A DNA stretch of 64,000 nt from Tubulanus polymorphus. Its lineage: Eukaryota > Animalia > Nemertea. Shown here one piece after another: positions 39,735-57,505 of this stretch (position 1 is its first letter; the number at the start of each line of letters is the position of its first letter). The position numbers and the translations under genes were made by a program. The notes below the pieces were generated by a model. It did not search any database. It was not told where the DNA came from and saw only the letters and a program-made list of their open reading frames with translations. The stretch is from contig NC_134035.1 in NCBI RefSeq assembly GCF_964204645.1, positions 5,394,001 through 5,458,000 of the forward strand, given 5' to 3'.

Positions 39735-40132
39735 CGCAGTTAGTTGACAAAACAGCACCAATTCCTCATAATAATCCTATGTTCTGTAGGAAGATTTTGA
39801 AAGAAAAATAAACAGCGTCGTGTGACACGTTGCCCGCAAAGTAGCTTATCACCGTCATCGTGCGCCACCTACAGCCGTATCCGCGTTTTATATACAGTCC
39901 AAGTCCGTGGTTTTATTTTCGAAAAAGTGTCACACATATTACTCGGAGTCATCCTTTGTTCGGCGTCACTGACGTGGAGCTGCGCGTAATGTTCGGATGG
40001 TTGATCACGCCTGTAAATATATCGTGTTACGGGTTTAATATCGGTGATTATTGTTACTCGTGCGGGATTCTATTCGTGATCAATGTCGTTATTTGTTACC
40101 GAGCTGTTTGTAATTACTCTCAGTATTTGAAA
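39735..40132. promoter_or_regulatory. Putative bidirectional promoter of the ZIP gene and the OB-fold/MYND gene
   Basis: Candidate ZIP 5'UTR exon donor near 39735 (- strand), TATATAAAA on the - strand near 39886-39894, inverted CRE half-sites cgtcactgacg at about 39964 and the ATG of the + gene at 40133. Confidence 0.5.
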
Positions 40133-43100
40133 ATGACGTCTACTCTCACTAAATCAGCTGTCAAGGTGCGTCAAACCCACAGGGACTTGTCACGACTGAT
40201 AATGGATGAGACCAATGATGGGGGTACCAGTATCCCTGCAACTGTATAATAAAATAACAAGGGTGGCAACAAATTTTCAATCTGACAATGACTTCTCCAC
40301 TTCAATCGACTGTAATTCCAAAAATTCTCAACCGATTCACATGAAATAAGCTTCAATACAACCTAGAAGACTTTCTGCTTCAAACGAGCCTACAACCACC
40401 ACTCTCCGACAATTATCTCACAACGAAATCACCTTTTTTTGACGAGAGATAGCTCAAAATGGAGGTGTACCGATTCTATGGTGGACAGCAAAATGGTCGT
40501 TTTTTTCAATTCAAACGATGATTTCTATGTGAGATCTTAGAGAAAACCCCAACAAACCATACATTTTTTAAAACTACGCGGTCATACCTGTACGCTTATC
40601 TCATTTATTTGTATAATCCACGCGATGGGTGAGCTCACAAGCTCAAAATCGAAAATGAGGACGAACACGGCGTTCAACTTGTCATCAACTGGGCGGCCAT
40701 TAATCACGTGATATCGTAGTAACGGGCTAAATATTTCACGCGCATTGATTGGCTTAGAGATTTCGAAAAACATTACAAAATTTATTAAAAGTTCTGTTAA
40801 TTAATAAAATATCCGTATTATGAAAATATAGTGCAACATTCGTCTGAGGGGTGGTATTATTAGCAAATATTTCCTTTTTTCAAGTCTACAGACGTAGACT
40901 TGTCGCGGTTCTATTATCATAGCCCGAACCTGCACGTCACGTGATTAATGGCCGCCAGCGCGATAGTGCGAGGTGACTTTTTCGTATATTTGTTCGATTT
41001 TGAGCTTGCGAGCTCACCCATCGCGTGGATTATACAAATAAATGAAATAAGCGTACAGGTATGACCGCGTAGTTTTAAAAAATGTATGGTTTGTTGGGGT
41101 TATCTCTAAGATTTCACATAGAAATCATCGTTTGAAGTGAAAAATACGACCATTTTGCTGTCCACTATAGAATCGGTACACCTCCAATTTGAGCTATCTC
41201 TCGTCAAAAAACGGTGATTTCGTTGTGAGATAATTGTCCTAGAGTGGTGGTTAAAGGCTCGTTGGAAGCAGAAAGTCTTCTAGGTTGTATTAAAGCTTAT
41301 TTCATGTGAATCGGTTGAGAATTTTTGGAATTACAGTCGATTGAAGTGGAGAAGTCATTGTCAGATTGAAAATTTGTTGCCACCCTTGTTTTTTATATTA
41401 TACAGGGATAGTGGACCTGGTCATTGATATTGGTTTTATTCATTCACTATCAATTGTGACAAGTCCCTGTGGTCAAACCCGACCGCCACGTTGTTACACG
41501 TGAATCCATCCACCAGCTCCATCATCGCATCATCCATCCATCATGCATATCAATTCAATATCATCTTGTTCTTGTGTCATCCACGATTGAGTGTACACTG
41601 ATACAGGGAGGTCGGGGTGCGCTTTAGGCGGGTGCGCTCTGTGATTGCGGAACTGACAAAGGTCGATTGGTGAACGGAAAAAATTGCCAGGATGGCAGGA
41701 AAAAATGGCCACAGAAAAAAAGGCCAAGGAAGATTAAATAGAAAACTATCATTTCATTAACATACACACAAAAGTAAGATGCATTGATATTTTGACATGT
41801 CACTTTTTAGATTTTTACACCAATTCCTGAATTAGTTTAGGTAAATTTAGGATGATCATATCTAACTTTGATGTTATCAGACACTGCTCAGTTTGTTATA
41901 TAAATTACAACACCATTTCAATTTACCTTTGATGATCTAAGACAGTCAGTGCCCTAAATGGCTTACGTTGATGTTATGAAATATTTATTTAGTTAATTAG
42001 AATTGTAAGTTCATCATATTTCTGAACGCATTATACCGATTTTAAATGTTTTAAGTCCCATAAAATGTAAATGATGTCATTTAATTGAAAAGTTAATGTT
42101 TTATTAACATTGTCAGTATTTCTCATGAATTTTCCTTGGCCAATTTTTCCTAGGCCAATTTTTCCTACAATCCCTGGGTATATCAGTTCCACTCTGAAAA
42201 GAAATGGTTCCAAGAAAAAAGGAGTGACGGAATGCCTTGGTGTTGGCTCGTACTGTTTCTTCATCATCTCATCCTACCCGCCCCAGTGCATTGACTATAA
42301 GTTAGTTTAGCTACCAGCAGGAGATTAGCACAACAGATGACAATAACAACAGCTCCTCTCCAGGAAGGATATAACTTGCCATGTGGGAGTCATTTTAGAG
42401 CAAATATTTGCTTGAAGTGACAGACATTTGTCCTGGCTTAAGAAACGATTGATGATATAATAATACGCCCCCGCACACACAAGGAAGTTCAGCTACCTCT
42501 AATTCACCTCAACCTGGCTGGTTTAATTTAATACAAAATAACGGCTCATACTGCTTGCCTTATAAGTGATCAAACTTTGTTTTAGTCCAATCGAGTCTAA
42601 AGTGTCTTGGCATTATGGAATCTTACATAAACAGTTAGGCCTTTAAACATACACTTGATAATAAATTTAACAAAGTGGTGATGGGTGCGAACAGTAAATT
42701 TGAATAATAAGTGTCGGATAAGAAGATTAATTTCACTTCAGTTTTGGAAAGTTCTTTTAACTAGTAAAACTGCAGTTAAATAATTCTAAGGCTGGAATTC
42801 ACTCAAAAACACTTTATTTCTGCTCGTAGAGATGAGAATAGAATTGGAGAATTGACTTTTAAAATCTTGATATAATGAATTATAGGAAATTAATTGATTA
42901 ATTACGTTTTTACTAAGTATACTCCTTTGACACTTAACAATATAAAGTCAATGATCAGTAAAGCCTCATTGGTGTTTTCTTCCTTTCAGCGTTTGTTACA
43001 GGGAGAAAAACTCAAAAATCCGACCGTTCAAGTCTTACAAAACCACGTTCCATTATACAACTGTGACAAGTCGAAAGAATGGGCGATTGAAATCTCGGAT

Positions 43101-46100
43101 GGAAAGAATTCTCATATAGGTAACGAGCAGTAGAGTACATGTACATGTAAATTGTACATGTATGATGATTTCGTTGAAGCCGTGAACTGGATTTTTTCCA
43201 TTTTTCAGCTCTAATCAATAGCGACTTGCGTAAACGATGGCGCAATGATCCATCAGTGAAATCGTTTATCATCGTCAAATTGAAACGTTACGATCAACTG
43301 ATGGTTGAATACTGTAGAGAGTAAGTTAATCATTATTATTATTGTTGCTTTTAATTGTTATCTTTATTAGCAATATTATCATTTTCATATCTAATTATCA
43401 TTAAGTTTATTTATTCCACAGGACAATCCCCCTATTAGGTACAGCCCCTAGGATTTGGGGTTGTTGTTCTTATTCATGTACCCATTTATTTGTGAAATTA
43501 TTCTAAAGAACTTACGTTTATAATGTTGTACATATCGTAAGTAAGTAAATTGATAATAAGTAATTGATAGACTGTCAGTGATGTTCAACAGTTTCATCGA
43601 ACAACTTGAAAAAACAAATTTTCTCTTGAAAAGTTGATGATCAATTATGATTGTTTGGTTCTTCAAAATTGACGGATACCGGTATGATAATACGTGAAAC
43701 TCATTGACTTACTCAAAGCTGGGATGAGCGATATGATGACAGCTCACAATAAATGAATTTAATTTACAAAAATTGAGAATTTAGGTATAAGGATGATTTG
43801 TCTGATTACAACTTCTGACGCAGTTTGACTTGTTTTATATGAAACTGCCCGAGTGGTCGTTCAGATTTACAGATGTAAGTCACAGGAAATTGAATTGTGT
43901 TTCTAATGTTTCTCTTGTAGGCGAATGCTAACTGTTCTCGATTACGAAATCATTGATTCGACTTTAACTTCGAAGTACGGAAATCCTGTTGGGTGTAAGC
44001 TCCGCTTTGTCTTAGCAGTTCAGGAGACAAAAGGTAAAGACGGAGTCTCCACTCGAGTTGGATCTTTGAAGACAGTAGAAATTTGACAACGTATTGCTAG
44101 CAGAGGCAAATTTTAACGAACTTGACACATCCCAAAAGGGCGCTTTGATTACCTAAAGGCAACATAAGATCACTTCTGCCTTGAGCTAATAAAACCGTCT
44201 GTTCTATCGTGATAGATTTTGTCACTTGAAACACGACCTCAAACCGTACACCCTCAGCAGTTCTATGTAGCAGGACCTGAACTTGTCACATCCCAAAAGG
44301 CACTATGAAGTGCACTCCTGCACTGAAATGCACCAATTTGTGGTTGCTGACAAAGTGAAAAAAGAACGCTCAACAATTTAATGGACTTGTACAAGTCTGA
44401 CAAGTCCCGCTGGCTTGCTGAGTAATTCTCTGAAGTTTAACAAATTTTTTCAGGTATAGATATTTGCACGCGCGATTGGTTCGGCTATGCTTGTACGTGC
44501 AATAATAATAACAATTTGCTGTTGCAAATTGAGCAAAAACTGAACATTAAACAAACAGGTTAGTACTGTAGTACCGATGTCACAGCAGTTTTGGCGCGAT
44601 GCAAGTGACTGTATGTCGAACATGGCTCCAAAACCGATTGCTTTATATTTATATGAATTTCAGAGAAGAAAGATCCTTCGAAAATGTCTCAAAAGTCATC
44701 GAAATGTGAATGTCATCATCACCAGGCTACGGCAGAGAAAAAACGAGCGGTTAAGAAACCGAAAAGTAAATCCGCATCAACGGAAGCAGTTACAGCGAAA
44801 TCGGTCGACAAGAAAAATGTCAAGCAAGGTTTGGGAAATCCAGAGAATAAATTGGACGTTAAGATATCTAAGAATCAAGTTGGCAAGGTTGTTGAAACCA
44901 AGCATGTCGCGTCAACGCAAACTTCATCAGCATTCAAGGTCAAAACTAAATCTACTGCGAGCTGGAAGCAGACGCCGTCTGGTAACCGACCGGCAGGCGG
45001 CAAAAAGGAAATTTTTACTTCGACGACGAAAAACGGCTTACGTAAAGAGCTTGTGGCCGATCAGGTGGAAGAGGTTACCGTCATCAATAGCGTCCTCGCT
45101 GAACGAAATCAACGAACTCCTCGTGCAGGCGGAAAAAACAACGTCGATATGGTCACCATAGCGACTCAAACAATGACGTCCGTTTCAATCGCGACGCAGA
45201 CTGAGTTTGATGATGATGATGATGACGAGTCATCGTCGTCTTCTGAGTAAGTATTAAGTGATCAACAGACGGATTAAGTTTGAATGTGATGGCCCTAGAA
45301 TTGTAATGTCACCTGATTTGGATTACTATTACCTAGTAGTTTCTACTCTTTAAGAGCTCAACTTCTACCAAAAATATTGAAATACTCTCAAATTAGTTCA
45401 TTTTTGATTATTAAACTACACTGTACTATTTTTGATGTAAAATGGAATTTGAAAGCGAGTACAAAACACAGAAGCAGCTCGTCTAGTTAGTAAAACCAGA
45501 AAATATACATCGATCACTCCTGTCCTTATGGAATTACATTGGTTACCTATTGAACAATGAATCAAGTACAAAGTGCTAATTTCGTCTTTCAGTGCATACA
45601 TCATTTGGCTCCTAATTATCTGTGTGATCTCATTCATATTCATGTCCCTTGCCGTCCTCTCCGTTCTTCTGCTTTTATATCTCATTGACAGTCTCTAGAT
45701 ACAAAAGAAAGTCTTTCGGTTCTCGGGCCTTTTCCATCCATGGCCCGACCCTGTGGTATCAGATTCTTGGAGACCTCCAGTCTATAACTTCTCTGGAGAT
45801 CTTCAAGAGGCAACTTAAAACATTTCCTCGCTTTTATGCGAAGCGTTCTGACCGGTTTTTATATAGTATTATTCTCAAATTATTCTGATTTTTTGATGAA
45901 AAGAGATGTGATGTATTAGGTAATGTGAGATGTGGTTATAGTTCTTGCAGGTAATTGATTCCAGATTCAAATTTTAAAGGGGAGATTTGTGTTGCGACGG
46001 TGCAGCTGGGATATAGCGAGAGCGTAAAAATCCTACATACTTCCTCATTAACTTATTTCAGGGACGACAGTGAAGATGCGATCTGTCGCAATAGTGATTG

Positions 46101-49100
46101 TAGAAACCCCTTCCTCGTCACAGATGAAGATGATATATATCTGTTTGAATGTATGAAGTGCGGATCAGATGGTTATTGTAAAATGTGTTTGGACGAGTGT
46201 ATAGTCTGTGGGTTTCTTCAATGCAAATCCTGTCTATTGCTGAATGAACCGTGTATGAATTGTGGCTACGGTGGGTAAGTTTCAGGCGAAAAACAAATAA
46301 ACGTTTACCGTCAAACTCGCTTAAGTCGTCGCATCACTTGAATTTAGAATTTGCGATTCGATTAACTAAGCCTATCATTTTGATTGAAAAGTCATCAACA
46401 GATCGACATATCTTAAACATTTTCAGCAGTATCTCAAAATCGATTAAATTCTATAACGAAAATGAATAGGTTTTCACGGTCAAATAACAGTACATCTTCT
46501 CAAATATAATATTGATTAGTGGCTGAAGCATGCTTTGAGGTGCTATACATGATGCTCAAAAGTTGGGTAAAAGTTTACGTGTTGATAACTGACGACGTTT
46601 GAATTAAAATGGCTTCAACAAGATAATTAACTGATAGCTCGTCTTTATGTTTATCTCACATTTCCCTCTGATTTATTATTTCACAGGTTTTATGAATTGA
46701 ACGAAACCTGCGACTCGTGTCAACATTATAAATTTTCCGTGCGACCGTGTCGTGTTTGTAAGACTCGTCGCGTCTGCCCTGATTGTACTCGACACTGCGG
46801 GAATTGCTTCCTGTTGACGTTTGCTTGTGTGAGATGTTTGATCGATTGCGGGACTTTATGCAGCAATCGTGATTGTGAATCTCGCATGTAAGTTGCTGAT
46901 TAATTGAACCTCTGCCTGCACATTGCACCCCTTCAGCCGTACAAACACCAGGGGCCAGTTGCTCAAAGGCTGGTTAAAGATAACCGACAGATAAATACCA
47001 TAGTAACAATGAACTTTTAATATTGTCACTATGTCGACTATCCACTGGTTAACTCTAACCAACTTTTGAGCAACTGGCCCCCAGACTTTAGACATTTTAT
47101 CAGCACACTTTCAAAAAATGATCATGCACGCTCCACATGTATTCAGAACTTCATCTGAAACATTTTCAATTGAAAATGAACTACAAACACTAGAAATTAG
47201 ACATTTTAACAGTGGGCTCTCAAAAACTGATCATCCACACTTCGCATGTGTTCAGAACTTCACCCGAGATATTTTCGATTGAAAATAAACTACGAACACC
47301 AGACTTATCGGCTCACTCTAAAAGACTAATTACCCAAATTACAGTTAATTGTTATGGTGGATGTCTAAATGCTGCAGATTGATACCTGTATCAACATCAA
47401 TGTAACCCGTTAAAGTTATAAGTATTGATTACTGATTCATCTATTTTCAGCGCTGATTGTGGTTGTACTAAGAATATGTGTACGATATCATGTGATTCGT
47501 GTCAGTCTGGTTATGTGTGTTTCATCTGTGCTGCTGATTGCGATATATGCAAGCGACACCATTGCGAGGATTGTGTTATGGATTTCGTGATCTGCGAACA
47601 TTGCGGTTTTCAGTAAGTATTCATCGTGTTGCCTGTTGCTGATATTCAGCTCTGCTGTGACCGAAGGTGGACTGTCGTCATCCATTCGTTCGTTCGTGCG
47701 TCTGTCAACTTTTTCTTCACATTGCTACTAAAATCCTACAGCTTTTATCAGATCAATTCCAAATTTGGTACGATTGTTCTGTTGACCAAGGCCTACAAAT
47801 TTTTACGGAGCCACTTTTATTCCACTAAACTGACCAGGCTATTGGGTTCACTTTTCGTCCGTTATCCATCTGTCCATCCATAAACGCTTCAATGGATTGT
47901 CTTGAAACCTGTATGTGGTTTACGCATGTATACCTTAGACACATCTTCTGTCCAAAAACTGAAGGATACCCAAAAAGTCTTCATTGAAAGGGGTTGAAAA
48001 GAGACTCCATAATTTGAAAGTTTAACAATATGTTTCGATGCCTACGTACCGAACTTCAGTTAGTAGGCATGGAAATCATGGAGTCTCTTTTCTCTAATGA
48101 ACCTCTTTCAATGCAAACTTTTTGGATATTCAAAATATCCATTCTTCAATACAGTGAATGGATTAAAAAACAATGTTTTTGGTCAATTGCCAGTCCTTTC
48201 TGGTCCTAATAAGACTCATCAGGTATGTAGTCTAGTACCTCACCGTCATTCTACAAACAACCGGTTGTAGGGAACCGGTAACAACGACTGGTATTCAGAC
48301 TAATCAGGTATGTACCACCAAAAATGACTGAGTTAGGCCACCTGATGTGCTCTCAAGTCAAGTTGAAATAGACATTAGTACTGGTACTGTATAAGACGTA
48401 TCAGGTAGTTCCATGGAATGAAATTATATCGGTGCGATATTATGAAATGCTACAGGCAAATGATAATACAGTGAATATGAAGCTGAAAGAAGATTAAAAT
48501 CCAATTCCATTTATGATTACAGAATGTGTGAAGCATGTGGGAACGAATACAATTATGAAAGTGAGGAGTCGTGTTGCTATTGTTTGAACAACAATTTTTC
48601 GGTGGCTTATTGCGATTTGGTAAACCGGAAGTGTTTCCACGGTGTTCGCGGCGGCGTTGAAAAATACAACGGACCGTACAAATCGCGCGCGCAGTTTAAA
48701 TACGAACTCAGCGCGGCGACGCGATCGTCTTGCGCGAAATGTAACAAACAGGTTTGTGTCGAGATTTTCAGTTGATCAGTTTTGGTACCTATGGTAAATT
48801 GGATTTTTTTCACAGTCTGAAAACTATGGAAATTTGTTTTTTTTTTTTCTCTATGGCTGTAAAAAATCAGAAAATGGTCTCAAAATAAAATCTTCCTTTT
48901 GTTTTGAATTTTAGGCTATATCTATGCCTAAATGTCTTATTGCATATTTGATAACAAACTTAATGAAAATGATTTGTCGATGGTATTGATAATTGGCACT
49001 TATTAACTTTGAATGGGCCTACATTGCCCGTTCTAGGTCGGCGATGTGTAACTTAGGGTTATGGAAAATTTATAGTCTTGGTATGGACAAGTATGAAAAT

Positions 49101-49752
49101 GAGATTTTCCAATTCATAAGAACTATGGTTGATGTAAAAAAAGATTTCAGGACTCTGGGGCCTGTTTCAAACACAGAGTTAGAATTTGTCTCATTAGAAA
49201 TTTGTCTCATTAGAATTAACCTGGAAATCGGGGAAATGTCAGGGAATTTTATTTTCCTTAAAAAAAAGTCAGGGAATTTTGTAAAAAAAGTTAAAAATCA
49301 GGGAGAATTCAGAGATATTTGTCAGGTAAGATTGCTAGATCAAAATCAAACAATTTCCATCTATGACTTCCATATTTGACTGTGTTGATTTATTGGATTG
49401 AAACAATGTGCATTTCAGGGAATAGTCAGGGAAAAAAGTAAGTCAGATAAAAGTGATCACCCTGGAATATATTTTGTTATTATTTTCTCGTCCATTTCAG
49501 CCTGGAATTGATCAACTGAAGCTGTGTTCGCGTTGTAAATCGGCGCCGTACTGCAGCCGGTCATGTCAACAGATGGATTGGAAGAAACATAAACAAATGT
49601 GTGGAGATTACATCCCGTTCGATCAACTGCCGTTCATTTCAGCTTGTCTCGAAGAATACTATGAACGAACTGAGAAAGATCGTAAAAAACTTTGCTACGA
49701 TGCAAAGAAAAATGAAACGCAAATTAAAACGAATGGTTTCGAATCAAAATAA
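40133..49752 (+). CDS. Uncharacterised protein of about 675 aa: RPA70N-like OB fold, basic linker with TQT motifs, Cys-rich CxxC modules and MYND zinc finger; 10 exons
   Basis: Exons 40133-40165, 42990-43119, 43209-43320, 43921-44033, 44664-45246, 46062-46274, 46687-46887, 47451-47612, 48523-48751 and 49501-49752 all have GT-AG ends with compatible phases. They total 2028 nt with no internal stop. The MYND finger CAKC...CSRC...YCSRSCQ..DW..HK..C is completed across the last intron. Confidence 0.78.
40178..41471. mobile_element. Foldback-type non-autonomous element (about 1.3 kb) with very long inverted arms and an 8-bp TSD
   Basis: Ends CACAGGGACTTGTCA and TGACAAGTCCCTGTG, with TSD GTCAAACC at 40170-40177 and 41472-41479. 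Positions 40256-40652 are a near-identical reverse complement of 40995-41390. Confidence 0.92.
45460..45830 (+). mobile_element. Decayed 3' fragment of an L2/CR1-group LINE ORF2
   Basis: Broken reading gives AARLVSKTRKYTSITPVLMELHWLPIEQ*IKYK and SFGSRAFSIHGPTLW...SLEIFKRQLKT, the typical L2/CR1-clade C-terminus, with a stop and frameshifts. Confidence 0.85.
46951..47081. mobile_element. PIF/Harbinger-like MITE
   Basis: TIRs ggggccagttgctcaaa and tttgagcaactggcccc. A degenerate second copy lies at about 60978-61100 in a NOSIP intron. Confidence 0.75.
47088..47305. repeat. Two tandem copies of a roughly 110-bp dispersed repeat
   Basis: ttagacatttt...tgatcat.cac...ttcagaacttca...ttgaaaat.aactac.aacac occurs twice, and a related piece lies at about 55725-55812. 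Confidence 0.7.
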
Positions 49753-50779
49753 TAGTTGGGAAATGTTTTTTAGCAAATTTCTTTTGTCACCTTTTTGGTG
49801 TCCGCAAATATTTTCTATTTCTGGAACACAGGAATAGAGCCGTTTTAAATCTATTTTTAGATTATGACATTTTACCCATTTATAACGTAATTCAAGGTTA
49901 TCTTGAATCTTAATTCTCTCCGTGTGGAAATATTTGAAGGCAAAGGTGAATTGATTTCAGGGCGGCTGTTCCCTTTCCCTCAATATGCCAGCTCGCTACC
50001 TCCATTCCTCTCCCACTATTGTCTCCGCTGCTTCTCTTGATCTCTCTGCCCCTCTGTCATTTTCCCGTGATCTGATATAGACCTAGGCCCAGTTCCACAG
50101 TTGTGAATTAGAGTTAACTCTCTGAGTTAAAATTAGTTCATTTTCAATGTTTTAACTCAGAATAAAACCTTGACTCACGAATGTAGAACTGGGCCCTAAG
50201 GAGGATCTTTCAACGACCAGTGTAAAAGAATTTTGTAACGAATCTAATTTTATGTATGAATCTTTTTATTACAACGAACTAGTGATGTAAATACAGTAAA
50301 TGTTTGTAGTTTTAGTAATAAAAACAAATAAACAGATAAAGCAGCAATAAAAATAATACAAAACTTATGTATACGATTTAAAGTAGATTATTGAGTAGGT
50401 ACAACATTATATACTAGTGACGCTTTAAATGAGTAATATTTGAGACAAATTAAGTAGTGAACTCGTAACAGGACTGGATGCAGTTCTGAGTAGATCTCAA
50501 ATACTGGGGGCACACATTTAGTAATATAGAAGTAGAAATTCGCAATGTGTTGTGAATATATTGATAATAATATATTCTACTCTAATTTGACAATGCTATG
50601 AGATGGAAGTGAGCTAAATGTAGTCTAACATACTCTTTATAGTTTGTATATAATGTATAATCTAATATACTCTGTATAATATGTGAAGAAGATCTTAAGT
50701 TAGTGTGATTTCTCAGTAGAGTCTCGGTTAAAGTTCTCTGATCCGAGTTTTAAAATCCATGATTGTTCACGCAATTATT

Positions 50780-51748
50780 TTACAAAGCAGTCTTTGTAGG
50801 CTCAGATTGCGTGGGGTCGTTTTGGTCATACGGTGGTGGGGCGACCATTCCTGCGTACTGTACCGCGGCCGGGTTCTGCTCTGCCCCGCGTACGTTGGTG
50901 GCGTCCGCGCTGGTTGTAGCAGGCGGCGGCGCGTAATTCAAATAGACGACGACCGCCGACTGATTGGCCGCTCGGGACGACGTCCCGCTGCGACAACACA
51001 CCGCTCGACAACAATACGCCGATTGGAGGATCGCGATTACGAATTCGACCAATGAGAAGATGACGATGAACGAATGCATAGCGACGTTCATCGGATGATA
51101 GATGTAGCGTCGGCAGTTGTAACCGTGGGGACAGCTATACCGGGTCCAGCGGAACCGATCGATCGGGATCAATACGGCCGATATAATCATCACGCTGATA
51201 GCGACGACGGCGCTGATAATACACAGGACCATCGTTGCGACGAGGATCTTCTTGCGTGCGAAACGACTACCCATTCCTAAACTACCGGCCACCATGAAAC
51301 AAACGCCGCCCCAAATTCCCTGACCGATCGCCGCGAATCGGGACTCGCGACTGGCGACTAGGATCACCTGAGCGACAATCACCAGTCCGCCGCATATCAG
51401 CTGGATTATGCCCATAGCCATGTGAGCTTTACGATGAGGGTACCGGGTCGTATCTGCTCGGGTCGTATCCTGCTGCATCTGTTGTTGCCCCAGCGGCTGA
51501 TATTGAACTTGCTGCATTTGGGGCATAGTCGTCATGACAACCTGCGGTTGGTTATGCATCGCTATGGGAACGTGTTGCGCCATGACGACTGGTTGCGGGC
51601 AGGCGCTGTATACTAGTTGTTGATTGGCTGGTGCAGTCGGTATAGTGATGTTTTGAGGCAGGCCACCTGCTGCTGGTGCCGTGTATGCGTATTGGATAGC
51701 TGGCTGTTCGTGTCCATTACTGTTAACGGCAGCTTGAGTTGAAGACAT
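50780..51748 (-). CDS. MS4A/CD20-like four-TM protein with Gln/Pro-rich N-terminus, single coding exon
   Basis: Likely start MSSTQ at 51748, downstream of an acceptor at about 51786. Contains MGIIQLICG, GQGIWGGVCFMVAGSLG, MVLCIISAVVA, an extracellular Cys pair, SLVEFVIAILQSAYCCRAVCC and a PPPY tail. Confidence 0.8.
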   Translation of the reverse strand: MSSTQAAVNSNGHEQPAIQYAYTAPAAGGLPQNITIPTAPANQQLVYSACPQPVVMAQHVPIAMHNQPQVVMTTMPQMQQVQYQPLGQQQMQQDTTRADTTRYPHRKAHMAMGIIQLICGGLVIVAQVILVASRESRFAAIGQGIWGGVCFMVAGSLGMGSRFARKKILVATMVLCIISAVVAISVMIISAVLIPIDRFRWTRYSCPHGYNCRRYIYHPMNVAMHSFIVIFSLVEFVIAILQSAYCCRAVCCRSGTSSRAANQSAVVVYLNYAPPPATTSADATNVRGAEQNPAAVQYAGMVAPPPYDQNDPTQSEPTKTAL

Positions 51749-52350
51749 GTTCACCGTCTGTATTATTGTGTGTGTGTTTGTCCCCTGAAATTGTAAAATA
51801 TACATTCATTAATCATGACACATATATATTGATTCGGTCAAATTTAGTTTCATGAATTCATTTACATAAAAAAGAAAGAAAATTGTCATTGACGAAAATA
51901 TCTGACCACGAAAATTATAAACCACCAAAAAAACGGAAAAACTAACTAACTGCGCATTTAAAAACAATTGATTTTCCATTTGCATCATGCATGGGGGGTT
52001 CATATTTCAGGACTTTATTTGTTGATAAGCGTGGAATTAATTCGGTTGATCGTATTATAATTACCCTGCGCGCTATGTAATTACAAAGCTCGGATGATTA
52101 ATCAAACGTTGATCATTAGTAATCGCGGAAGTATTATGAGCAAAACTTGGGAAAACCCAGAACGTAAATCCCAAAATAAGCGACCGTTTCCTCAAATTCA
52201 AATTTACTATATTGATAAATGTTTAGCGGCGGTCGCTACGTTGACGTATTTACTTCCGGGTTCTCGATTCGACGACGCGATGCATGGTCAGAATTGTGCA
52301 GGTTTCAGCAAGTTTTCAGCGGCGTCAGCAGCACAGAACCGACCTCAATA

Positions 52351-55300
52351 ATGGACAAGATGGACTTCTCGTTACTGTTAACCTTGGCGCAGGGAAACCA
52401 AAAAGATAAAAAAGAAGTAAGGCTTAGAAATTTTGACTTGAAAATGGTAGTGAATGAATGAATATGCTAAATCTAAAAATAAAAATAGCCTAGGTTATTT
52501 TTAGAAATTTGGAAAATGCTATATCATTGCATAATAAAATGAATACAAGAACACTGATATTGAGGTTCTGACCCAAGAATCCTTGAAGTACAATGTTTAG
52601 TAGGCCTACATTTAAACCAGGCCCACCATTTGAAAAAGGCCTATTATATGAATTTAATTTAACAGAAGGAAAATTTCTCATTAAATCAGACCAGTTTTTT
52701 TAGCTTCATTTAGGTAATGAAAAATCTGGCTCATACACTTGAAGAGCAGTCTCGTCACAATGGCGGCGCCAGTGGAGTTGCGATAATAAATGTTTATCCG
52801 TTGTTTGTTTAATTGTATTGTAGCAGTCGAAGAGGGAACCGCGAAAATTCAGCACGGTCGTACCGCCCCCGAAAAAAGAGAGCAAAACTCAGAAACCAGT
52901 CGTCGCGAAGGATGCGATCAAATCACTTTTAGAGAAGAAGAAACAAGAGGAGAAAGCGGCGAGAAAAAGGCGAAGTACGTCAACGCGTGGGCTTTGAGTA
53001 GTTGGGCCAGAGTTCTACATTTCGGATTGAAAGTCCAATGACCGCCATCTGTTACAAACGTTCAAGTGGGCTGGGAAAGCAACTTGGCACAATAGAATTG
53101 AATTTTAAGCGCAAAATGTTGCCCTTAGTTTGTGTTCAATTCCCGGGCAGAGATTACTCTTTCAGAGATTAAGGATAGGGGAAGAGAACTGTATTTTATA
53201 GACTTGTCAATTATTATAATTATCATTACTATATTACCATAGGTGCCGCCAAAATTTGAAAAATATTGGTCTCTAAAAGTCTAGGGCCTGTTTTGAATAC
53301 CTCAGGCGTAGTACAAATTGGCAATTGTGCTAATACTGTCAGAAATAGATTTAACAATTTTTAAATTTCTTACTTAGGTCAAATCTTATATTGAATGTTT
53401 TAGCGGATGAATTATTATTTTAGAGTTCATTAAGACGAGGCTCCACTGAATCGGCAGCCCCACTTGTTGAACAAGAAATTTTTTGAAATGCACTTTCTCA
53501 AAAAGGCGCTGTCTCGAGTTGATGACAGTTAGTAGTAATTCATGTTATATCCTCTAGTGACAAATATCATGATTTTCACTCAGATCTCAGAGTGGGAAAA
53601 TCGAAAAAATTTCCCTGTGCTTGCGTGATTGCAACTGAGCTGCAATCTCGTATATTGAACTAACAAAGGAACCCGCTTAATTCGAATAATTTGGGACCAA
53701 CAAAATTCATCCTGTATTTGGGAAATCCGGATTAAAAGTAATTTTCTTCTATATGATAAACAAATGACCGCAAATGTTGTCCGGATTAGACCAAAAAACG
53801 GATTAAGCCGATCCGGATTAAGCGGGTTTGACTGTTGTTCAACAACAGAAAAAATTCAAAACTACCCAACTGAAAATTTTATTTCCTTCCGATGGCCCTG
53901 ATGGGTAAAAAATTGTAATCGGATATTCATTTGCATTTCAGTCGAAGCAATTGTGAAAAAAGACCTCGATAAACGCAACAAGGGCAACAAAAAACTGCAA
54001 CATGACGAGAAAAAGGAGTATAAACTCGATCCGGACGAGTTGTTCGCCAAGCAACATAAACAATACGTCGAACAGAAATATACGAAAGACAAATTGAACG
54101 CCTTGAATTTACAAGAGAAACTGCTGCGTATAAAATCGAACATGATCGGGGGAATCCCCGTCATCGAGAAGGAAGAACCGCCGCAGCAACAGGCGCCGGT
54201 AGAGAAAAAAGACCGTGATTCGGAAAAGCGCAGCAGAGATAGCGCCTCGAGTAAATCGTCGTCGCACGGGAGGGATCATAAAAAATCGTCGTCGGGTCAG
54301 ATCAAAGAATTTAAAAGTCGCCGAAGTCGTAGTCGTAGTCGGTCACCTTCGCCGCAAGTCGACGTCAAGAAGAGTGTCGCCGCAAAAGATAGGACGAAAA
54401 CGAAACGACCGCCGCCGCCGGCAGTTCTGTCGTTCGACGATTTGATGAAAATGGCGCAGGATAAGTCGGCGTCGGACGGCAAGGCGGCGCCACCGGACGA
54501 AAAGAAAGAGAAGGAAAAGAAGAAACCGGAGATTCCGCGGCCGAAGGGCATGCCCGACCGGCCGATGACGCAGGACGAGAAAGAACACTGGTTGCGTAAA
54601 CAAACGAAGGAATATCAGGATTGGATCCGACACGGTAAAGAACGACCTCAGTTCGAGATCGTGAATAACAAACGCCGACGACCGAAGTATACGACGGCCG
54701 GGCAACCGCTGAACGACGGACGCGGACCGAATTTCAAAAGTCGCGAGCGCTTGCCATCGGCTTCGGAGAGCGACGACGAATTGCCAGATCCGAATGCGTC
54801 TGCCGGCGCCGGAAATACGGCGTCGAGGTCGAATAGTTCCGCGTCGAAAAAGGATGCAAGGAATATTAGCGGTAGTAAGTTGAATAGTTCGGTGTCGAAA
54901 AACGTTGTTAGGAATAGTAATAGTAACGCCAGGAATAGTAATAGTAATGCCGGTAGTAGTGGTAGCAGTAGCGGTGCTAGTTCGAAAAATAATTCCATTC
55001 CGGCGAAAAGTTCTTCGAAATTTCAAACCGCGTCGCGTAACGGTCACAATATTTCCGCTCAAGATTCACGTAAAACGCCGTCGTCGTCGAAAATTGCTCA
55101 AAACAACGTGTCGCGACCGTCCGTCGACAAACGTTCGGGATCGACGCCGAACGTCGGGAAAATAACGAAAAAAATTCATTTGTCAGAAAATCGCGAGCGG
55201 TCGGTCCTGAGTAAGACCGTTAGTAACCGCAGTACTTCGTCATCGGGAACGAAGGGTTCGAACAACAATTCGAAGTCGCGCAATTCGCAATCGGAATCGC

Positions 55301-57505
55301 GAAATCGACAGAAAAGTTCCCAGTTGAAAAACGGTTCGTCCGCTCGATCGAACGATTCGAATCGGACGCTGTCAGGTCGCGGTGGCGCTAGCGGTCGTTC
55401 AGACGATCGAGCGAAAGCGATCGCGAAGAAAAATAGTTACGCCGAGGAGAACGATAACGTTCTGGTGTGTCGTCCGGCAGCGGCTGAGGAACCGTTGAAT
55501 CCGTGGGATCGAATTTACGGCGAGATTCAACGCAATCGGCCCGGTAAGAATTTAAACTTTTTAATTGTTTTGATTTTAGTCTTATCCACACAGTCAGTGA
55601 ATGATGGTTGATTTGTTCTTTTATTGAACACATCAAGCAGTCTGTAGTCTGGACCCATTAACAGATATTCTGCCTGTCATCTGCTGCCTAGTGTCTGGTC
55701 ATCTGGACTCATTTCCGGACTATCTCTGAGACATTTTTTATTGAAAATGAAGAGCCAACACTTAACATTTGAAATTTTATCAGCACACTTTCAGAAACTG
55801 ATCGTCCACACTAACACTTACAGTAGTAAATGTCTGAAGTGGTCAAGTGGTTCTAGTATTTGATGAGCAAAACCGGCAGTTGATGATATAACAGTTTATT
55901 CTGACAGTTTCGAAGTTTTGACTATAAAACTTCACATTAGAGGAATGAAAACAAAACTTTGAAACTGTCAAAATGTATTGTTAAATCATATCATCAACTG
56001 TGGGTTTCTCTCATTAACTCTTGAAATACTGAGATTATTGTCAACCAGTCAAGATGAATTTTGACGAAGTGTCAGTTTTTTGGTGAAATGCGTTTCACAT
56101 TCGTCTTATTTGAATTATACAGTTAAACGGCGTCACGTGGAAGATGAATACGATGATGAGGACGATTATTACGATGAAGAAGATGATTTTATCGACGACG
56201 AAGATGACAACGATAGTTTCATCGACGACGGACCGATCGGTGGTCAGGAGGATATCAGCTCGGTTATCAAACAAATCTTTAAATACGACAAACGAAAGTA
56301 AGAAAAAAATTCTTGTCATTTCATTTCTATTTGATGACATCAATACCTCAGTAAGCTTCAGTTGAACTCAAGTAAATACTTGGGTAAGATGAAAAACGAT
56401 TCTCTAGTTATTTCATTTCTATTTCGACATCCATACCTCGGTTTAAGCTTCAGTTGAACCTTATCATTACGAACTCTGAAAATTTAGAGGCTAGTGATAT
56501 AAATGGAATTATGATTGTCATCATTTTTGTGGTGCTCTAATAGGTTGGCCTGGAAAACTCGGGGAATCAGAAAAAATCAGGAACTCAAAAAAAACCTGGA
56601 AAATTCATGGAATTCAGATAATGCTACTTATTGTACTTACTGCTACTAATTGTCCACTTAGTTCTTTATCAGTACGTGATTCAATGAAAAATGAATTTAA
56701 ACATTTTAAACCTAAAATTTCCTCAAGTTCACTCAAGAAATTTTGTTTAATCACATGGACAAATCAGGGAAAACTCAAAAATTGGGGATTTGTAAATGTG
56801 TGGAAAGTGGTCACCCTGCCTTTGGTCTGGCCCTGTGGTTTTATAGACTGGTTTAAATTTTTATTCGGCAGTTAACTCGATTGGCAACGAATTGAGTTGA
56901 CACCTTGAATTGACACCTTGAATTATACTGGAAAATATTACCAATAAAAAAAAACTGTCCCCTGAATTGTTGTAATCACTTAACTGAATATAATATGGAA
57001 CTGTCTGTTATCTAACAGTTTTTCTGATGCCGAAGCTCTCTGTATATCAGGACCTGTCTGTCTGTAAAATCTTTGTTGATGGATAAGTGAAATATCTACT
57101 CTTTAATTTCAGATATCGCGACGAAGATGAAGATCTGAGTTGTATGGAAGCGAGTTTTGCTCAGCAAATGAAGGAAGAAGCTAGGAGGTTTGTATTACAC
57201 TTAAACTTTATCAACTCGGATAAGTAATACACAACTTAAATCATCTCTTTTTGAGTCGCGATTTATATTTGCCAAACGTAATTCGTCATTTGGATAAGTT
57301 ACCACAGTTCTCAGAGTGATGAGTTATCAGACGTCGACTGAACGATAAATTTTCATGAAATCGCGGTTCACTTATAACGTATGATGACTTTTATTTCAGT
57401 GCTCGACTCGGGCGGGAGGAGGATCTCGAAGACATTCGTCGCGAAGAAGAGGAATTGAAGAGACGAAAAATGTTACTCATGAAAAAGAAGATGAAGACTA
57501 AATGA
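52351..57505 (+). CDS. SPTY2D1: SPT2 chromatin protein homolog, 6 coding exons
   Basis: Starts MDKMDFSLLLTLAQGNQ and continues KFSTVVPPPKK, PPPAVLSFDDLMKMA, RPMTQDEKE and a long Ser-rich region. The C-terminal SPT2 domain reads DSFIDDG...DISSVIKQIFKYDKRKY...MEASFAQQMKEEARSARLGREEDLEDIRREEEE. Confidence 0.9.

Follow-up and report, generated by a model that had tools for sequence, protein, structure and literature searches.

Exons, transcripts and annotation of the locus

The window analysed here is a 64,000-nucleotide (nt) stretch of the genome of the palaeonemertean Tubulanus polymorphus (RefSeq assembly GCF_964204645.1, contig NC_134035.1, positions 5,394,001–5,458,000 of the forward strand), and coordinates below are those of the window unless a C2 prefix is given. 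An earlier note, made from the letters alone, described a hidden ten-exon gene at 40133–49752 that would combine an OB fold like that of the N-terminal domain of RPA1 (RPA70N), TQT motifs, a polycysteine array and a MYND finger. Assembly by script confirmed that ten GT-AG exons on the + strand join in frame into 2028 nt (675 codons and a TAA stop), with the N-terminal peptide that had been quoted. All acceptors are AG preceded by a pyrimidine tract and all donors are GT, eight of the nine being GTAAG/GTAAA-like. The 675 amino acids (aa) include 59 Cys residues and contain no enzymatic domain.

The gene is not hidden along its whole length. RefSeq already holds residues 137–675, about seven-tenths of the protein, as the uncharacterized 539-aa protein XP_074660786.1 (Tubulanus polymorphus LOC141913213), which matches the model letter for letter. 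This match marks the source as a spiralian, the group across which the earlier note had proposed to search. This annotation begins at a Met in exon 5 (Met137, at 44684), and its sole family assignment is zf-MYND. Exons 1–4, which carry the OB-like domain, and a candidate exon 4b lie outside the RefSeq model.

The sequencing runs containing this DNA all belong to one 2024 study, in which run X4 behaves as RNA, with no depth over introns 5 and 6. An 801-nt X4 contig, laid out as 45176–45246, 46062–46273, 46686–46887, 47451–47612 and 48523–48670, carries exactly the junctions between exons 5 and 6 (45246>46062), 6 and 7 (46274>46687), 7 and 8 (46887>47451) and 8 and 9 (47612>48523). This exact agreement, together with the RefSeq match, the MYND profile that spans the exon 9/10 junction and the colinearity of exons 1–4 with RPA1, puts the exon model beyond chance. 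The RNA confirmation asked for by the earlier note was thus obtained for exons 5–9, while the junction between exons 4 and 5 was not observed in X4.

Exon 5 (44664–45246) encodes a low-complexity linker (residues 131–324). It contains a basic cluster, KKRAVKKPKSK (44732–44770), followed by three TQT motifs, namely ASTQT at residues 212–216 (44915–44923) and two copies of IATQT ten residues apart, at residues 295–299 (45164–45172) and 305–309 (45194–45202). Only 0.1 such motifs would be expected. TQT anchors in a disordered stretch, often more than one, are typical of clients of the dynein light chain LC8 (DYNLL), and the linker carries such motifs; it would be a predicted LC8 client. An acidic patch starts at 45206 with a run of six Asp and continues with Ser, Asp and Glu.

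Exons 6 (46062–46274), 7 (46687–46887) and 8 (47451–47612) each encode one module of ten Cys residues with the pattern C-x2-C-x5-C-x2-C-x3-C-x2-C-x4-C-x2-C-x6-C-x2-C or one closely similar. Pairwise identity among the modules is 26–32% and all three exons are of phase 2-2, which together is a signature of internal exon duplication. Pfam assigned the Cys array to no family, and a profile of the modules run against the PDB returned only generic zinc ribbons such as bL32 (E = 0.014). A look-alike search of the array in the ESM Atlas gave nothing at ≥0.8. AlphaFold2, run without an alignment on residues 186–500 of XP_074660786.1, produced an unusable model, with a predicted local distance difference test score of 34 and a predicted template modelling score of 0.20.

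Exon 9 (48523–48751) closes the Cys array, continues through a spacer and reaches, from 48731, the first CxxC of the MYND finger. In exon 10 (49501–49752) the finger is completed (to 49602) and is followed by the C-terminal tail with the TAA stop; AATAAA signals lie further downstream at 50161–50351. The zf-MYND profile (PF01753) matches residues 450–490 of XP_074660786.1 over positions 1–39 of its 39 with 41.3 bits (41–43 bits over the profile searches; cut-off 22.7), and it is reached in full only across the exon 9/10 junction. All eight zinc ligands of the C4-C2HC type, in the order C-x2-C...C-x2-C...C-x3-C...H-x3-C, are present (C586, C589, C601, C604, C610, C614, H622, and C626). The TQT motifs, the Cys array and the MYND finger had all been read correctly from the letters.

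No relatives were found for this part of the protein beyond the MYND domain. A HMMER scan with exon 7 of 1.84 billion representative proteins gave one real match, XP_074660786.1 itself, and two repeat or low-complexity matches. XP_074660786.1 searched against 5.8 billion proteins, in the length window searched, returned only itself. A homologue search with exon 5 was blank, and no paralogue of exon 7 was found in the genome. Judged by these searches, the Cys/MYND body is an orphan gene that ends in a standard MYND finger and is without detectable relatives outside T. polymorphus.

Relationship of the first four exons to RPA1

The earlier note required that a canonical RPA1 exist elsewhere in the genome, and this is the case. 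When the entire 268-Mb assembly was searched in six frames with the Pfam family Rep-A_N (PF04057), the only place found was C2:26631637–26631756 (−), where the canonical RPA1 N-terminal exon scores 36.1 bits. Rep_fac-A_C was found only at C2:26627008–26627336, which is 4.3 kb downstream on the same strand. The canonical Tubulanus RPA1 thus occupies C2 26.627–26.633 Mb (−), and its N-terminal domain is split into five small exons. These were taken from the stretch C2:26630137–26633256, minus strand.

We compared the joined residues 1–129 of the gene model with the N-terminus of this RPA1 using a local script. A blastp alignment spans both from end to end over 134 columns, at 32 bits and 22% identity (pairwise E = 5e-7). 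Smith-Waterman alignment scores 68, compared with 25.6 ± 4.3 for shuffled sequences (z = 9.8), and none of 10,000 shuffles came up to that value. Every exon block adds to the similarity, in colinear order: the observed score was reached by 0 of 3000 shuffles for exons 1 and 2 together, 40 of 3000 for exon 3 and 197 of 3000 for exon 4. Both proteins start alike (MTSTLT in exon 1, MTSLT in RPA1), and the landmarks LT..A[IV], P..Q[IV]L, SDG, and G[NS]P are retained in the OB exons.

The gene structures agree as well. Exon 1 (40133–40165), which encodes MTSTLTKSAVK, is bounded by a phase-0 intron that follows A-[IV]-[EK] and shares its alignment column with intron 1 of RPA1 (K11 in the OB copy, E10 in RPA1). 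Exon 2 (42990–43119) encodes the first half of the domain, including P-T-V-Q-V-L, and is followed by a phase-1 intron six codons past S-D-G, again in the same column (codon 55 versus 54). Exon 3 (43209–43320) encodes the middle of the domain up to a phase-2 intron in the codon preceding R-[MV]-[LM], which is also shared (codon 92 versus 90). Exon 4 (43921–44033) completes the domain, with YGNP, and the intron that ends it is of phase 1 in both genes; its positions, codons 130 and 127, differ by one column where the tails align only weakly. An additional RPA1 intron, which follows QIL, is absent from the OB copy. The common intron positions and phases argue for descent by partial duplication of RPA1 rather than for convergence. 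From sequence and gene structure, exons 1–4 are best described as a strongly diverged paralogue of the RPA1 N-terminal domain that arose when the 5′ exons of RPA1 were copied in an ancient partial duplication, and the kinship to RPA70N suspected from the letters is borne out.

The earlier note also offered a TPP1/Est3-like OB fold as an alternative for the N-terminus. OB folds are hard to separate by sequence, and the Rep-A_N profile is indeed blank when the exons are queried singly, so an unrelated OB fold with a convergent likeness to RPA70N has something in its favour. However, the similarity runs end to end, is specific to the worm's own RPA1 N-terminal domain and includes the common MTS(T)LT start. 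Together with the three to four intron positions and phases in common with RPA1, this points to common descent. We therefore disfavour this alternative and regard it as very improbable.

The putative ligand site has changed. In RPA70N, acidic or amphipathic peptides dock to arginines of a basic cleft. The cleft segment D-R-Y-R-L-M-L-S-D-G of the worm's own RPA1 aligns with K-E-W-A-I-E-I-S-D-G in exon 2, so that both arginines are replaced, one by Glu and the other by Ala. The replacement, which had been proposed from the human protein, holds against the native RPA1 too (RYRLMLSDG versus EWAIEISDG, the latter at 43077–43103). By descent the OB copy is a member of Rep-A_N, with an altered ligand site. 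The protein is not an RPA1, as had been argued, since no RPA DNA-binding OB domains follow: Pfam finds only zf-MYND in residues 137–675.

Despite only 22% identity to RPA1, the frame of the OB exons is open over 129 codons, for which a probability of ∼1.5e-4 would be expected with random codons of the same composition. With eight splice sites kept in addition, we infer that the OB exons encode a protein under selection. This bears on a further possibility, in which the partial RPA1 duplication left the OB exons behind as a silent relic, neither spliced nor translated, and the gene consists of the RefSeq part only. No RNA contig lies on exons 2–4, no annotated protein includes the OB exons and single exons fall below Pfam detection, all as expected of a relic. 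A neutral copy at this level of divergence should nevertheless have lost its frame and splice sites, yet four exons with AG/GT borders remain open and both the intron phases and the landmarks are retained. A silent relic is consequently improbable, though less so than an unrelated OB fold.

Searches with single exons gave little. PF04057, which has a gathering cut-off of 26.7 bits, gave no match at E ≤ 10 to exons 2–4 when these were queried singly (36–43 aa each). In the PDB, exon 2 had only a chance sequence match to chondroitin synthase (E = 4.6) and exon 4 had none; the ESM Atlas returned no usable look-alike for exon 2, and no paralogue of exon 2 was found in the genome. The PDB match of exon 3 to tethered dimers of HIV-1 protease (E = 4e-4) was rejected as a false lead, as a short FI.V..YDQ word was counted twice. 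Within exon 3 (43211–43318), the stretch S-F-I-I-V-K-L-K-R-Y-D-Q resembles F-I-K-V-R-Q-Y-D-Q of the protease by chance, an illustration that single-exon searches can mislead.

Probable connection between the OB exons and the Cys/MYND exons

The central question is whether the OB exons and the Cys/MYND exons belong to one gene. Several features suggest that they do. The OB exons share the strand of the orphan gene and precede its first coding exons by ∼0.4–0.6 kb. Exon 4 retains a consensus donor (AAG|GTAAAG) at the phase-1 position homologous to that in RPA1, which makes it unlikely to be a terminal exon, and the downstream exons 4b and 5 are both of phase 1, as exon 4 requires. The CpG observed/expected ratio is 1.4–1.7 at 39800–40200, ahead of exon 1, and 0.45–0.78 in intron 4, which shows no promoter-like peak. 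With its upstream neighbour on the opposite strand and a CD20-like gene converging from downstream, the unit at 40.1–50.3 kb is self-contained.

The candidate exon 4b spans 44454–44558 (105 nt, phase 1-1). In RNA, exon 5 has a single upstream partner, an exon whose last base is 44558 and which is joined to 44664 across a GT..AG intron, with 25–28 nt covered on that side. Its putative acceptor at 44453 is T-rich, its phase is compatible with exon 4 and its sequence is unique in the genome. From this acceptor to Met137 only the gene frame is open; ∼42 codons before Met137 are open, for which the chance is ∼0.06, times one third for the phase, or jointly ∼0.02–0.06. Inclusion of exon 4b gives 11 exons and 710 aa, and skipping it gives the 675 aa described above.

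Exon 4b encodes a run of five Asn. At the corresponding place in the canonical RPA1, the 60-nt exon of phase 1-1 next to the N-terminal domain has a run of six Asn. We did not count this as homology between the two exons, as the sequences are of low complexity and shuffling is an unfair control for them.

The same region can also be read as two transcription units, in which exons 1–4 would encode an OB-only protein, of ∼146 aa on read-through of the exon 4 donor or with its 3′ end elsewhere, and a separate 539-aa Cys/MYND protein would start in intron 4 and be translated from Met137. Several observations speak for this division or weigh against a single gene, the silence of PF04057 on single exons being among the latter. 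A junction from exon 4 to exon 4b or 5 was not seen in any transcript, and X4 contigs lie on the end of exon 4b through to exon 9, with none on exons 2–4. RefSeq begins the protein at Met137, and a longer isoform was not found among the 5.8 billion proteins; no annotated protein contains the OB exons. Reading through the exon 4 donor leads to a stop after 17 codons (TGA at 44084) and then to an AATAAA at 44188, and an OB-only product is therefore possible. Exon 4b contains no in-frame ATG, and there is a stop 14 nt ahead of its putative acceptor, which would allow it to be 5′ untranslated region (UTR). Only 25–28 nt of the exon are seen in RNA, so that its 5′ end could be a transcription start, and the segment could equally form the 3′ part of an alternative (non-coding) first exon.

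The missing X4 contigs further 5′ are weak evidence, because the X4 depth of 12.6 on exons 5–9 falls to ∼5.6 on exon 5, with gaps inside that exon. The AATAAA at 44188 sits in a dispersed repeat and not in a dedicated 3′ UTR. An OB-only gene would have to account for the consensus donor of exon 4 at the RPA1-homologous phase-1 position, and a separate start in intron 4 for the lack of a CpG peak there and for the chance opening, in the gene frame only and phase-matched to exon 4, of exon 4b and the start of exon 5. An unspliced first exon is not seen either, X4 depth being zero at 44444, 44468, and 44496. The X4 depth at 44094–44443 was considered as such a first exon and rejected, as it coincides with the dispersed repeat and stops short of those three positions. 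Finally, a homologue search with the open stretch of exon 2 was blank, and no protein of 43–138 aa carrying exon 2 is on record. On this evidence two separate units are the less likely reading, and a fused transcript joining the OB exons to the Cys/MYND exons is favoured on balance.

The introns contain several repeats. In intron 1, two arms of 402 nt each (40252–40653 and 40993–41394), 96% complementary and 339 nt apart, form a foldback that looks like a young inverted-repeat insertion, either a miniature inverted-repeat transposable element or of the foldback type. Intron 4 is mostly repeat. The dispersed element at 44101–44413, which carries the AATAAA at 44188, has at least 45 copies of 68–87% identity on many chromosomes, and part of it is repeated directly within the element. 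In the DNA run X2, 168 nt are skipped (44149>44318), and the two features suggest a length polymorphism. Very high-copy elements with many rearranged joints lie at 46880–47277 (intron 7) and 47875–48471 (intron 8), with a summed contig depth of up to 25,000 in the DNA-like and RNA-like runs. They are probably abundant transposon or short interspersed element families and are also transcribed.

Two open reading frames follow the gene. The convergent neighbour at 50780–51805 (−) is a single-exon frame of 341 aa; its N-terminus is rich in Q and P, and it includes a four-helix membrane domain of the CD20-like (MS4A) kind (PF04103, 30.9 bits). At 53953–55611 (+) there is a frame of 552 aa in which Lys, Ser, Arg, and Asn abound, a low-complexity sequence of the RS/KS type without a Pfam match.

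A candidate adaptor protein and its comparison with known systems

We propose that the locus is one lineage-restricted chimeric gene of T. polymorphus, the 3′ seven-tenths of which is LOC141913213, and assign this reading a probability of about 0.55. The 5′ exons of RPA1 would have been partially duplicated long ago, giving rise to four exons that encode a diverged RPA70N docking OB domain. These would then be spliced to the orphan gene, most likely via the 105-nt exon 4b to give 710 aa. The RefSeq model of LOC141913213 is probably 5′-truncated, or at least incomplete, in a phylum with little annotation support.

If the known functions of the families apply, the product would most likely be a zinc-rich multivalent protein-protein adaptor, probably nuclear. 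It would begin with an RPA70N-type docking module whose basic cleft has been rewired (Arg to Glu and Arg to Ala), followed by a disordered linker with a basic cluster that resembles a nuclear localization signal. Three TQT motifs of the kind bound by LC8 would dimerise the protein; LC8-type TQT anchors usually dimerise their carriers. The acidic Asp/Ser patch would then lead into three exon-duplicated 10-Cys putative zinc modules and a C-terminal MYND finger for PxLxP-type peptides. In the absence of OB domains for single-stranded DNA (ssDNA), the protein would not bind DNA as RPA does. RPA recruits checkpoint and repair proteins through RPA70N, and the replacement of both cleft arginines argues against continued binding of the classical RPA70N ligands. 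A role in genome maintenance or as a chromatin adaptor is conjecture, and for genome maintenance the hint comes solely from the descent of the first domain.

A stronger version of this proposal is that an RPA70N domain was copied, rewired in its cleft and fused to an orphan zinc/TQT/MYND scaffold, making a young nemertean-specific adaptor and the first RPA70N found outside an RPA-type ssDNA-binding protein. To this we give roughly even odds. To our knowledge, RPA70N normally occurs only at the N-terminus of RPA1-type proteins. The literature contained no paper that we could find combining "RPA70N" and "MYND", and "Rep-A_N" gave only irrelevant matches. If true, this would be a clear case of exon shuffling in which the docking module of a replication protein was re-used ahead of an unrelated zinc-finger/MYND gene, and the adaptor could link ligands of the RPA70N type with those of MYND. 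The functional payoff is modest for now, because the gene has no detectable relatives outside the species.

The closest comparison for the first domain is RPA1 itself. Its N-terminal domain (DBD-F, Rep-A_N, PF04057) is colinear with the OB copy over the whole ∼125 residues, while none of the ssDNA-binding domains DBD-A, DBD-B, and DBD-C follows the OB copy. At the other end of the protein, the complete MYND finger is shared with the MYND adaptors ZMYND11/BS69, ETO/MTG8, DEAF1, and SMYD. The MYND domain class docks PxLxP-type peptides of partner proteins. We know of no protein among these adaptors with an RPA70N-type OB domain or a 10-Cys array.

The middle part recalls LC8 hubs of the ASCIZ/ATMIN type, which also combine zinc modules with several TQT motifs in a disordered region. 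This resemblance is a lead only; ASCIZ/ATMIN has about eleven TQT motifs versus three here, and the domain order differs. The proposed origin resembles that of the jingwei-type chimeras, in which 5′ exons of a parent gene were copied with their intron phases ahead of phase-compatible exons, as here; in our case the fusion transcript was not observed. Taken with these systems, the locus would be an example of domain shuffling making a new architecture in one lineage, and its protein is a MYND-finger protein and not an RPA1.

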